A stretch of 64,000 nucleotides of DNA. Source: Tubulanus polymorphus (taxonomy: Eukaryota > Animalia > Nemertea). Made by a program: the position numbers and the translations under genes. The stretch spans positions 12,474,962 through 12,538,961 of the forward strand of contig NC_134034.1 in the NCBI RefSeq assembly GCF_964204645.1. The letters run 5' to 3'. Shown piece by piece: positions 3,261 through 23,642 of the stretch (positions are counted from its first letter, which is position 1; every line of letters begins with the position of its first letter). Under the pieces are notes generated by a model. That model ran no database searches. It saw only the letters and a program-made list of their open reading frames with translations, and had not been told where the DNA came from.

Positions 3261-3652
3261 TTCAGTCAGCCCCCCCGATAAACTGCCCACACATCGGGGC
3301 AGAACGATTTTGGCAGTATAGCGAATGTATCAGGGGGTGTTTTACAATGTATTTGCATAAAAGTATACAGGATCATTCATTACTTACGTACGGATGAAAT
3401 TAGAATTTTTAAACCCCCCTCCCCCTCTGTACACAAAATCGGCCATTTTATCATATACATTAAGCATTACAGTACGCAATTTCACTAACCCCCTCCCCTA
3501 ATGCATACGTAATAAATGAATGACCCCTGACATGTATTAAGAAAACCTGGCAGTAGGCGGGGGTGGCAGTATATCACTGGTTGACTCCAAGGTATTTTTT
3601 TAGTCCTTTTTTGAAATATTCAATTGTGGCAGTATATCGGGGGTTGATTGTA
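3261..3652. mobile_element. MITE (cagtcagccccccgata...tatcgggggttgattg) with a nested palindromic element at 3370-3527
   Basis: Outer TIRs match those at 52185-52825. The inner element (ggatcattcat...atgaatgacccc) recurs at 24761-24923. Confidence 0.7.
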
Positions 3653-3841
3653 GCACTACTAAAGTGCTACCTTTTGGAAAAACTTTCGTCAGTCTGATCA
3701 CGATTTCTTGGTTGATCCTGTTTCCAGATTTCCAAAAAACAACCAACAAACATGAGAACTCAGTTTTTTAAATCAACCATAAATATCTTCTCTTATTTTT
3801 TACACAAAATAAAAATCTACACAAAATAAATGCTTCAAGAA

Positions 3842-6800
3842 TCACACTTCAGGTGGCGCCACTTTATATTCCTCGTCGGTCTCGATACCGATTTCTTCCT
3901 GGAAAATATAAACCAACAAAACAGTTAAAGAGATTGATAGACATGATGAGGCATTGAGCTCATCAGCAGCCATTGACAGATTCCCTGAATAAATCTGAAG
4001 AATTTCTATTAAAATGTTATAATTCATTCATCTTTTTATGAATTATGTAGTGATGTAAGAAAAGTGTGGTAACTCATATCCAGATCCCCTGAATTTTCCA
4101 TTTTCCCTACGAGGGTATCAGTGATGGTGTCTTTGAGTTAGTCAAACGATGAGTGTATATCTAGTCATGGGTGCATTCGATGTAACATGAACCAGACAAC
4201 CACACATCACTCGACTACCCTCTAGAGGGCGCAGGGAGGACGAGTGAGAGCTCAGCTCGTCCTGGGGAAGGGGTAACACTATTGAGAACCAGGTAACAGT
4301 AAACTATCATACTAGAAATCCTTGTAATGAGTTGACTGGTCTCAAACAGCCAGGGATGAGTGTTCATCTAGTCATGACTAACTAAACATGGACTGAAATA
4401 GACGCTCATCAAAAGCCATCAGACATAGAAGGGATGGATTGAGAAATAGAGGTAAACCAGGGCTGGATGGAGAGATAGTTAAACCAGGGCTGAATGGAGA
4501 GAGATACAGTTAAACCAGGGATGAGTGTTCATCTAGTCATGAAACATTTATCAACATGGACTACGAATAACACACATCAACAGTGAAACTGCTGAGTGTC
4601 GCAGGTGTCAGCAGTGAGTGTTGTATGAGTCGGTGGGGAGTGTCGTAGGTGTCAGTGGTGAGTATACCTCTAGTCATGATTAAGTAATATTTAACATTAT
4701 CTAGAAATATAAACACAACCTCCACACGACTGCTTTATTTCAGGCTCCGCTCAGGCTGGTCCTCTCTCCTCACTGGCTTGTCCTCTCTCCTCACAGGCTG
4801 GTCAGGCTGCTGCTGCTGCTTTCTCGTGTCACAATGCGATTGTCTCGATACGGTCTGGATGAGTGTAACTCTAGTCATGATATCAATATTCGACATGGAC
4901 AAGAGAAACAACCATCAAAACAGAATCAGTAATATTACTCTACAGCAAACTCTGACCACCTTGCACTATTCAACCACTCTGTCCAACTAGGAGCAATTCT
5001 TCATATCCAAGTGTGGCTAATACATTTATCTACACAGACAGAGCTTATGTTGCACCCATAGCAGTAATTACTGTGTACACATCACAGTTAATCTAAGGCA
5101 GGATTAGACTGTCTAACACTTCATTAACGCGTTATTATAGCAAGTGATTTCATCCATTGTCAAATCATAAATCAAAGAAAGGAACCAAACCAACTGTGAA
5201 ATGGGTGTTGTATTCATTGTACTCTAACACAAGCTGACTGACACTTTAATTATCCACTTATCAATTAGTCACTAACTACTCATAATTGATCTAATAATCA
5301 CACACACACTAACTATAGTGTACTAACTATTACTTTTAATTGCGATAACAGTTTGACACTCGGATACCAATTCAGTTTCTGAGTCAAGAATACCCCCCTC
5401 CCAGGGTCCAACCACTTGCCCGGGGCAGGACTATATTAAATTCACTTGATCCCCCAAAAAGATTTTGGATTTAAAAATACACCTGCCCGGTGGACAAGCG
5501 AAAATGACCAACTTACTCAAATGAGAATAAACTTATACCGGGCAATTGGACAATGCTTAGATCGGACCCTGCGGCCCTATATCATCAGTAATACTTACGT
5601 AAAGTTGTTTTTTAGTTTTAGGGTAACCTTCTAATATCGCGTTGAGGATATCATTCGCGAGACGTTTTCGTTTCTTCCAGATTTTCACGTAATTCGCTCG
5701 TTGAGTCATGACTTCTTCGCGCTCTTCGGGAGTCACTAAATCGCCGGAGTCTTTTATCACTTTCAATTTCGTCTCCTTACTGTTTATCTATAATTATAGA
5801 ATCATCAGAATTAACAAACAATGATGTTTAAGAGTGGGATCTACAGTTTCACAGTTCAGGATCCAATCATTGCGGGAATCAACCCATTTAGTCTTCTGAC
5901 GGATGATTGTGAAACTAATATGACTGCTGCGTAGACGGCAAGTTCATTTTCGAGGGATTAACCTCTTCACTACCACAGATAATGTAACGTACCTCACCAG
6001 AATTCGAACCCAATTGCATCATTCAATTCTCATAAATTCGGTATTAGAGGAACTAATCCTCCATCTATGAGTAAAAATTTGAACTAAATAGAGGCAGACA
6101 AGCACATAGTACGGCTATACGCCGGCAGTGTAATGACTCACCTCGCCAGCGATTGCAGTAAACGCACATATCTGTGACGTAAATATACATCATGCATGGT
6201 GAGATTAGGTCATTATTTGCGATGTAAATATACGTCACAAGTGGTAATGAAGGGTTTAGCGAAATTTCATCCACGGGCAAGTGGCGTTTTGATCGAACCC
6301 TTTAGAGCGGTATTCCGTTTACCTGTTGTTCTAACTGTTTACACTGAGCGATCGCCTCCTCGGTGCCGATAGCGCTCGACAACGATTTCAACTCGCTGTC
6401 CATCTTTTTACACGCGTCGTGATAATCTCGTAAATTAGACGACATCTCGACGATCTCCTGGTCCATCTTCTTAATCTCGGCATCGTCGACATCGGCGAAC
6501 TGACTCTACAAACACAGCACACGTCAGATTTACAGTTTTAAGTCTTAAAACTAACTATCATGGTTCCCACAGTCTAGATGAATTCAATATTCCCAAGTAT
6601 TTCATGGGTGATTTTTCAATTTTCCCAAATGGAAATGAACACATATCGTCATGCAACAGTCAACATTTTTGCGGTGACTGGTTGATTAAGGTGATTTTCA
6701 AGGGAAATTGCTGAAGAAAATTGCCCTTGGCAAATGCAATATGTGAAATGTAATGAATTTCCCAAATATTTCCCTGATTTGAGGAAATTTTTTTCAAATT

Positions 6801-8229
6801 CCCAAATATTTCCAAACTATTATTTCCAGATTTCCAAGTTTTTCCCAATTTCCCTGTTCTGTGGGAACCATGTATAATCCTGTTTAAGTTTCTCGATATT
6901 TATTCCCGACGATGTGAGGCGTGTCTCGTACCTGATCAACGACGTAGACTTTTTGTTTCCCGTAAAGTTTCTCCCGGACTTTTCCCTCCTGCGTCAACTG
7001 TTCGCATGATTTCACCACTTGCTTAAACAGAAAATGTCAACTTACTTACAACAAGGTTCCTACAATTCCTGGTATCCAGAATTCAAAGACTTTTCAAGGA
7101 GTAATTTTCAAAATTCAAGGAGGTTTACGCGGTCATATATAAGGAAAAAAAGTCGAAAATACAAAAACAAAATCCATGTTTTTCTCAAATTTTGATCAGT
7201 TGTTGTGTGTGCCGTTTTGGTTTTACATGTTTAAAATCTCTAAGTGAAACAACTTTCACTCACAAGTCACACAATGAAGAACAATAGAATACACTGTCTT
7301 CTGAAAAGCACCTTTTGAAAGTTTTTAATAGGACTTTCCCAGAATTTAAGGAGTTTCAAGGAGTTTATGGATATTTCTCAAAATTAAAGGATTTTCAAGG
7401 ACCTTGAAAAATATATTCAAAAATCAAGGAGTTTTCAAGGATTCAAGGAGTTGTAGGGACCCTGTACAATTAATCTTTCGAGTCTGGTGCTGCCAGTTCT
7501 AGAGTAGAGTAGATCTAAAAAAGTTAGATTTGAATCTGTAGGTTAAGTTTGAAAGTTCAATTCAAGTCAGATCAGATCATTAGAAGTACACAAGTCCAAG
7601 ATCTTATTTAACTTAACTCTTTGGAGAACTTCAAAAACCCCGTTTGAACTTTGTTTTTTAAATTACGATTAACAACATATTTAGAAAAAAAACATAACCA
7701 AGAAGTTCTCACTCATTCACATAATAAGCCCGGTAATTCGAATATAGGTCAACAGAACTCATTTTCAAACTCTCCAACGACTTTGTGAACGTTTTCTAAA
7801 ACAAACAATTTGCTGCTTTAAAGATTATTAACCCTTTCAACTCAAAATCATCAAAATAAACTCATTTTCCCTTTTTCTGTGTAAATCGTTGATACGTACA
7901 GTTTTGCCATATTCTTTATGAAGGTTGCTGAATATGTCGATGGCGCTGTAAGGTCGATTCTGTCTGATCAAATATTCCAGCACGGCTTTAGTAGCTGCGA
8001 AATTAAAACAAGCAAACAATCAGCAGCCGTTAAAGGGTTAATTAAACTCCCGGGCAACAGGTACCCGTCCGTGTGACGTCATTACTCATTCATAAACTTT
8101 CCCGAGATATTTACATAAACTTTACGCCGAATTTAGCGGCGCATTCCACCGTTAAAATAACCCGATAAATTGAATAGAAGTTCTTAAAAACTATATTCGC
8201 CTACCTGACGCTTCTTTGCCCTTACTCAT
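3842..8229 (-). CDS. PSMC3IP: Homologous-pairing protein 2 (HOP2/TBPIP), meiotic recombination factor, 6 exons
   Basis: Minus-strand exons 8229-8205, 7994-7900, 7021-6932, 6505-6323, 5787-5599 and 3898-3842, all GT-AG. They give MSKGKEASATKAVLEYLIRQNRPYSAIDIFSNLHKEYGKTQVVK...KLYGKQKVYVVDQ...WKKRKRLANDILNAILEGYPKTKKQLYEEIGIETDE..*, carrying HOP2 signature motifs (NRPYS, YGKQKVY, WKKRKR, ILEGYPK, GIETDE). Confidence 0.95.
4146..4208 (-). ncRNA. mir-279: pre-miRNA, miR-279 family (copy at 4.15 kb)
   Basis: Predicted 3p arm 4167->4146 is UGACUAGAUAUACACUCAUCGU, with seed GACUAGA and close to the recalled miR-279 UGACUAGAUCCACACUCAUCCA. A complementary arm runs to ~4208 and there is a lower stem (tagtc/gacta). 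Confidence 0.8.
4353..4410 (-). ncRNA. mir-279: pre-miRNA, miR-279 family (copy at 4.35 kb)
   Basis: Minus strand reads GAUGAGCGUCUAUUUCAGUCCAUG-loop-UGACUAGAUGAACACUCAUCCC. The flanks pair with G:U wobbles on the minus strand. Confidence 0.85.
4518..4578 (-). ncRNA. mir-279: pre-miRNA, miR-279 family (copy at 4.52 kb)
   Basis: 3p arm UGACUAGAUGAACACUCAUCCC is identical to the 4353 copy, but the loop and 5p arm differ. Lower stem cagtt/aactg. Confidence 0.85.
4655..4720 (-). ncRNA. mir-279: pre-miRNA, miR-279 family (most diverged copy)
   Basis: 3p arm UGACUAGAGGUAUACUCACCAC with a complementary arm (..tctagaaatataaacacaacc on +) and lower stem gtcgt/acgac. Confidence 0.7.
4856..4916 (-). 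ncRNA. mir-279: pre-miRNA, miR-279 family (copy at 4.86 kb)
   Basis: 3p arm UGACUAGAGUUACACUCAUCCA; 5p arm GAUGGUUGUUUCUCUUGUCCAUG. Confidence 0.82.
6559..6872. mobile_element. MITE family B (TIR catggttcccacag); inverted copy at 33787-34081
   Basis: 14-bp TIR; the internal sequence is a close reverse complement of 33787-34081. Confidence 0.85.
7052..7464. mobile_element. MITE-like element with ttcaagga subrepeats
   Basis: Imperfect TIR caaggttcctacaattcc / ggagttgtagggaccctg. Confidence 0.55.
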
Positions 8230-23411: not shown

Positions 23412-23431
<20 letters not shown>

Positions 23432-23642
23432 TCGACATCGACCTGTCTTAACTAGTCAACATCGACCTGTCTTAACTAGTCGACATCAAACTGTATAAAC
23501 TACAGTAGTCAACATCGACCTGTCTTAACTGGTCAACAGCGACCTGTATAAACAAGTCGACATTGACCTGTATGAAATAGTCAACATTGACATAGACCTG
23601 TTAAAACTAGTCAACATCGACCTGTTTTAACTAGTTGACATC
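23412..23642 (+). repeat. 24-bp minisatellite spanning the TMEM198 stop codon and proximal 3'UTR
   Basis: Unit catcgacctgtcttaactagtcra, ~9 degenerate copies; the first contains the TAG at 23429-23431. Confidence 0.85.

Follow-up and report, generated by a model that had tools for sequence, protein, structure and literature searches.

Five miR-279-family hairpins in the last intron of HOP2 in the palaeonemertean Tubulanus polymorphus

INTRODUCTION

The last intron of HOP2, a gene of meiotic recombination, in the palaeonemertean Tubulanus polymorphus holds five short foldbacks, and the question that they raise is whether they are microRNA genes of the miR-279 family and whether their expression is tied to that of the gene in which they lie. 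The family that shares the GACUAGA seed comprises mir-279, mir-996, mir-286 and cel-mir-44/45 (Mohammed, Siepel and Lai 2014, PMC4238352). Its ancestral miR-279 copy is described as one lone intergenic gene in both Capitella and Lottia, and arthropod members have repeatedly been duplicated and relocated to introns of protein-coding genes: mir-279 of the aphid and mir-279/996 of the Hymenoptera lie in POLA2, and further intronic clusters are known from honeybee GB18694 and Heliconius HMEL003294 (PMC4238352). Another member of the family belongs to an insect egg/early-embryo cluster (PMC4238352). Lineus longissimus is the sole nemertean in MirGeneDB 3.0 (PMC11701709), and its microRNA set was the one nemertean set that our literature search brought up. 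Our literature search found no paper linking miR-279 with HOP2 or PSMC3IP and none on miR-279 in Nemertea or on microRNAs of Tubulanus polymorphus, in agreement with the initial annotation, which was not aware of a described HOP2-intronic miR-279 cluster.

RESULTS

The hairpins lie in sense orientation in the last intron of HOP2

All positions given below without a chromosome label are those of the window, the whole 64,000-nt stretch of DNA that was analysed. The host was identified as HOP2/PSMC3IP, on the minus strand, by Pfam and by tblastn with the HOP2 protein of Tubulanus polymorphus at NCBI (P0146, [quoted passage not shown] 212 aa). The coding exons were placed by tblastn at 7998-7900, 7021-6932, 6505-6317, 5787-5599 and 3898-3845; they were searched singly, and the full-length comparison rests on the database protein P0146. 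The upstream coding exons (6317 to 7998) carry the TBPIP winged helix and coiled coil (PF07106, E = 1.7e-10 and 1.1e-6; 97 to 100% in tblastn). The penultimate coding exon (5599 to 5787, residues ~132 to 194) carries the LZ3wCH domain (PF18517, E = 1.9e-7) and is identical to the NCBI protein over residues 140 to 194, up to the splice site, while the last coding exon (3842 to 3898) encodes residues 195 to 212, matched at 100% over 18 residues, and the stop codon. Pfam also matched the TBPIP/Hop2 winged-helix domain to the minus-strand open reading frame pieces 7840-8019 and 6887-7018 and the LZ3wCH domain to the minus-strand pieces 5560-5766 and 3845-4027.

The last intron, on the same strand, spans 1,700 nt (3899 to 5598) between a GTAAGT donor at 5598 and a CCAG acceptor ending at 3899. 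The hairpins occupy 4930-4134 of this intron and have the same strand as the host, with 668 nt from the donor to the first hairpin and 235 nt from the last hairpin to the acceptor. Exon placement by tblastn and the GT-AG borders agree with the original assignment of the cluster to the host-sense strand of the last HOP2 intron, and this intron is presumed to be the primary transcript of the cluster. A bacterial-type promoter and terminator scan of the intron was disregarded, as such a scan is meaningless in an animal intron.

Three public sequencing runs, all from one study, contain the region. Run X1 is DNA and covers the cluster at a uniform, single-copy depth of ~38x. In the same DNA run, high-copy repeats downstream of the HOP2 stop codon (3294-3687) and in the middle introns of HOP2 (6446-7627) reach k-mer depths in the thousands, versus ~40 elsewhere. 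Runs X2 and X3 are patchy and cover 44% and 35% of the stretch, respectively, which is approximately their share of the whole genome; two of their contigs begin precisely at a GATC/GANTC site (4083 and 7966), preceded by 12 foreign letters, and their contigs cross exon-intron borders unspliced, with no GT-AG joints. Given the restriction-site starts, the unspliced contigs and the genome-like coverage, we rejected X2 and X3 as RNA and read them as Hi-C-type DNA. A joint in X1 from 4169 to 4518 was likewise rejected as an assembly-graph artefact, since its short side has 22 letters and it links two hairpins that share sequence. In a second sample, for which the data are scant (4083-4400, 4488-4681 and 4699-4888), differences were confined to 4629-4637, in a spacer minisatellite.

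Five hairpins share the start of their 3' arm

The cluster consists of five miR-279-family hairpins on the minus strand between 4134 and 4930, with start-to-start spacings of 201, 137, 165 and 207 nt. On this strand, TGACTAGA occurs at 4167, 4374, 4539, 4676 and 4877, against a chance expectation of ~0.014 in ~800 nt of one strand, and a count over both strands of the 64-kb window found one further copy besides the five. In all five hairpins, UGACUAGA opens the 3' arm and is preceded by an invariant CA.

In the direction of transcription of the host, hairpin a (4844 to 4930) has a predicted 3p product at 4877-4856 (UGACUAGAGUUACACUCAUCCA) and a predicted 5p product at 4916-4895. Hairpin b (4643 to 4727), the most divergent copy, has its predicted 3p product at 4676-4655 (UGACUAGAGGUAUACUCACCAC) and its predicted 5p product at 4717-4695. 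For hairpin c (4506 to 4592) the corresponding predictions are 4539-4518 (UGACUAGAUGAACACUCAUCCC) and 4578-4555, and for hairpin d (4341 to 4424) they are 4374-4353, with the same 22-mer as hairpin c, and 4410-4387. Hairpin e (4134 to 4222) has its predicted 3p product at 4167-4146 (UGACUAGAUAUACACUCAUCGU) and its predicted 5p product at 4208-4186. The five predicted 3p matures thus amount to four distinct sequences, hairpins c (4539) and d (4374) sharing theirs, and none of the five equals the canonical UGACUAGAUCCACACUCAUCCA; comparison of the 22-mers therefore reproduced what had been noted at first sight.

The further copy of TGACTAGA lies on the plus strand at 690-697 and would appear in a minus-strand transcript as a perfect 8mer miR-279 site. 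This position is ~3.1 kb past the HOP2 stop codon and beyond three polyadenylation signals, so the site is probably in another transcript; as a single site, it is within chance expectation. A minisatellite at 23428-23613 contains two 7mer-A1 miR-279 sites (CTAGTCA) and two further 6-mers, with no 7mer-m8 or 8mer sites.

Each precursor folds as a single hairpin

The hairpins are 84 to 89 nt long, with 16 to 19 of the 22 predicted mature nucleotides paired, a terminal loop of 12 to 18 nt and a basal stem of ~10 bp. Each of the five precursors folds as one single hairpin, at energies of -24 to -37 kcal/mol and z scores of -2.0 to -4.3 relative to dinucleotide shuffles, in line with the foldbacks noted in the initial annotation; the octamer count and the folding together agree with its account of five minus-strand foldbacks with 3p arms that start alike, every checkable detail of which was correct. 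The z scores were lowest for hairpin e (-37 kcal/mol, z = -4.28) and hairpin b (z = -4.26), followed by hairpins c (z = -2.82) and d (z = -2.49), while hairpin a, which has several bulges, was only modestly more stable than its shuffles (-25.5 kcal/mol, z = -2.05). The shapes agree with MirGeneDB-type criteria, which ask for an imperfect hairpin whose mature duplex has at least 16 paired nucleotides, whose loop is short and whose basal stem measures ~11 bp. A CNNC motif located 15 to 20 nt past the 3p end in four of the five hairpins, b included, lends weak support to a reading as microRNAs.

Sequence and structure models assign the hairpins to the miR-279 family

We scanned positions 3500-5600 against all Rfam families, among which mir-279 is RF00754, with a gathering score of 56 bits. 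On the minus strand, RF00754 matched hairpin a at 54.7 bits (E = 5e-10), hairpin e at 51.6 bits (E = 3.3e-9), hairpin c at 48.6 bits (E = 2.2e-8), hairpin d at 44.2 bits (E = 3.4e-7) and hairpin b at 24.3 bits (E = 0.077), so that all five scored under the gathering threshold and homology was statistically clear for four of them (E ≤ 3.4e-7). Plus-strand scores at the same five sites were about half of those on the minus strand, and a weak mir-44 match overlapped hairpin c. With R1, a model of our own made from the 18 miR-279-family hairpins that we found in the Tubulanus genome (see below), hairpin a scored 75.3 bits and hairpin b, by construction, 53.3 bits.

GACUAGA occupies nucleotides 2 to 8 of the 3p arm in all five hairpins, and an ACUCAUC block at approximately nucleotides 13 to 19 of the mature is found in four, hairpin b reading ACUCACC. 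Family membership, as first proposed, is thus backed by the Rfam matches, the seed, the fold and the covariation described next.

Conservation is concentrated in the mature arm and covariation in the basal stem

Within the five hairpins, and likewise within all 18, identity was 0.81 to 0.82 in the mature arm, ~0.62 in the 5' arm, 0.34 to 0.38 in the loop and 0.26 to 0.29 in the flanks, the last being random level. This profile (0.81/0.62/0.38/0.28 for mature, 5' arm, loop and flanks) matches the initial description of an invariant 3p start alongside diverging loops, spacers and 5p arms. CAUGACUAGA and ACUCAUC show little or no variation among the 18 genomic paralogues, and hairpins c and d, with their identical 22-mers, are 77% identical over the whole precursor.

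The RNAalifold consensus of the 18 precursors has 28 pairs, 15 of which show compensatory double changes, mostly in an 11-bp basal stem that itself lacks sequence conservation. On the consensus structure, 86.9% of cells were paired, versus 32 to 45% when the 3' partner was slid by 1 to 3 columns; the covariation score was 0.441, versus at most 0.138 when slid, and it was reached by none of 500 shuffles. Recognition by the Microprocessor requires a basal stem that is conserved in structure only. A conserved mature arm, random loops and flanks, and a compensated basal stem are what one expects of microRNA genes under selection, and to judge from the alignment the five hairpins would be such genes.

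The inter-hairpin spacers (4430-4520, 4593-4663, 4745-4803 and 4806-4820) consist largely of short tandem repeats, with units of 27 to 29 nt (x3), 22 nt (x3.2), 21 nt (x2.8) and GCT (x5). Two of these arrays have their start within the 3' basal stem or flank of a hairpin (c and b), which looks as though the flank had been copied anew. The segment 4001-4109, a short way downstream of hairpin e, belongs to a dispersed repeat of ~110 nt that is unrelated to the microRNAs and has at least 26 copies, at 73 to 83% identity, on many chromosomes.

The genome holds at least 13 further miR-279-family hairpins

A search of the 268-Mb genome with the Rfam model brought the number of miR-279-family hairpins to at least 18, spread over five loci; at least 13 of them, at four loci, lie outside HOP2. 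They comprise a tandem cluster of seven on the plus strand at C1:23624176-23625101; a tandem of three plus one hairpin on the opposite strand at C10:11677477-11678120 and 11684270-11684351, ~0.8 Mb from the window on the same chromosome; a single hairpin on C7; and a canonical hairpin on the minus strand at C8:12583801-12583891. The C8 hairpin contains UGACUAGAUCCACACUCAUCCA exactly, has the top score in the genome (65.5 bits) and is probably the ancestral copy. Eight of the paralogues elsewhere in the genome score above 56 bits.

The mature shared by hairpins c and d is also that of the fifth hairpin in the C1 cluster. By BLAST, the HOP2 cluster resembles the other loci within the hairpins only (60 to 80 nt, 72 to 81%), to the exclusion of the spacers. 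A maximum-likelihood tree of the 18 precursors supported none of its 15 inner branches, so we claim neither a single origin of the five HOP2 hairpins nor an order of duplication nor orthology from cluster to cluster. A Pfam search of eight open reading frames around the C1 cluster gave no domain match.

The placement in HOP2 is lineage-specific

HOP2 loci with their introns were compared from Ruditapes philippinarum, Mytilus galloprovincialis, Pecten maximus, Lingula anatina, Owenia fusiformis, Capitella teleta and the heteronemertean Lineus longissimus, and an eighth locus came from a Logan contig of a relative, which contains the penultimate HOP2 exon and 872 nt of intron. Searching all eight loci with R1 found no miR-279 hairpin at E values up to 1, and an Rfam search of the Ruditapes, Mytilus, Lineus and Logan loci gave no match at E values up to 0.5 to 1. 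Since the HOP2 of seven other spiralians holds no such hairpin, the placement in HOP2 is lineage-specific. The proposal of a lineage-specific expansion thus held up in this check of HOP2 synteny, in which the hairpin was absent from Lineus and from six other spiralians.

In protein collections, the next-best HOP2 to that of Tubulanus is only 62% identical, so the comparison of placement extends to Lineus and other phyla and no closer. Accordingly, either the insertion took place after the split from Lineus, or Lineus has lost it; we give it no finer date. In a metagenome scan with CATGACTAGA-N5-ACTCATC, none of the 120 contigs listed contained a HOP2 exon or a Tubulanus-type mature. Lineus and Lingula have a HARP/SNF2 helicase gene (SMARCAL1-like) head-to-head with HOP2 (L029:1-928 and L031:1-110).

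DISCUSSION

Family homology, hairpin geometry, selective conservation and a sense position in the intron together characterize the five foldbacks. In our view they are likely to be five paralogous microRNA genes of the protostome miR-279 family that are clustered in the last HOP2 intron as a polycistronic unit and would be transcribed with their host. Their processing, their co-transcription with HOP2 and any role in the germline are inferred. The hairpins would be transcribed within the HOP2 pre-mRNA and cut from the intron co-transcriptionally by the Microprocessor (Drosha/Pasha), after which Dicer would trim them. The 3' arms that start with UGACUAGA would then be loaded into Argonaute and repress mRNAs with matches to the GACUAGA seed, so that the expected products are 3p-arm microRNAs with one common seed that differ at positions 9 to 13 and 20 to 22. 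As for their origin, a miR-279 copy may have moved into the intron and then duplicated in tandem, as part of the genome-wide expansion to at least 18 copies; this duplication would have taken place long ago, because the spacers can no longer be aligned.

The main rival to this reading is an internal promoter. The five would then be genuine miR-279 hairpins with an intronic promoter of their own, or a separate non-coding unit, and would be expressed independently of HOP2 and not necessarily in the germline; we regard this as a real, if clearly less probable, possibility. The 668 nt of intron upstream of the first hairpin could house a promoter, and the miR-279 family in model animals is mostly known from somatic tissues. 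Against this, microRNAs in introns are commonly co-transcribed with a host gene on the same strand, and direct evidence for an internal start site is absent. The sense orientation of one cluster is itself a 50% chance event and so does not prove co-transcription. A separation of this kind has happened in Drosophila, where the mir-279/996 cluster escaped from its host intron and has become a unit of its own (PMC4238352).

A minor rival, which we consider improbable, is partial decay, under which some or all of the five would be pseudo-hairpins, left over from the genome-wide expansion of miR-279 and no longer efficiently processed. It would account for all five scoring under the Rfam cut-off when eight paralogues elsewhere score above it, for the ACUCACC and the 24 bits of hairpin b, for the bulges and the z score of -2.05 of hairpin a, and for the minisatellites that have arisen from the flanks 3' of hairpins b and c. 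However, all five hairpins retain the seed and the greater part of the mature arm despite loops and flanks at random level, which neutral decay would not produce, and compensatory changes keep the basal stems, with each of the five still folding singly. A third reading, that of an inverted repeat of transposon or satellite origin in which the seed octamer occurs by chance, could point to the dispersed repeat at 4001-4109 and the short tandem repeats between the hairpins, but it is effectively refuted by covariance-model matches to mir-279 over whole precursors (E down to 5e-10), by the uniform single-copy DNA depth of ~38x across the cluster and by the fact that similar sequences in the genome are other miR-279 loci only, with the likeness confined to the hairpins.

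The HOP2 copies share with the ancestral protostome mir-279 the seed, the ACUCAUC block and the length and shape of the precursor, along with a dominance of the 3p arm that their pattern of conservation implies. They differ from the canonical sequence at positions 9 to 13 and 20 to 22 and, unlike the single, intergenic ancestral gene, they are clustered and intronic and score just under the Rfam cut-off or, for hairpin b, well under it. The resemblance to the arthropod intronic loci lies in the move into the intron of a conserved gene, the local duplication, the diversity outside the seed and the clade-specific placement; the phylum (Nemertea), the host gene (HOP2/PSMC3IP) and the number of copies (five) set the Tubulanus cluster apart. 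Since the HOP2 of seven other spiralians lacks the hairpin, its origin is independent of those arthropod loci.

The cluster is less singular than was first claimed, given the known mobility of the family and the at least 13 further hairpins in the genome. Convincing as a lineage-specific microRNA cluster, it is nevertheless a fairly ordinary one, and the result is one at the level of annotation, with no new mechanism. The idea of a germline or maternal function derives from the role of HOP2 in other organisms and from nothing else, and that the cluster is made mainly in meiotic or germline cells, by processing from HOP2 pre-mRNA, appears to us doubtful. Were it so, Tubulanus would have a miR-279 module coupled to meiosis, with a loose parallel in the mir-286 cluster of the insect egg and early embryo, and the link to HOP2 leads to a simple, testable prediction, namely, germline expression. 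For the family, the locus adds an independent, non-arthropod case of miR-279 entering an intron and amplifying there, in a palaeonemertean that carries at least 18 miR-279-family copies.
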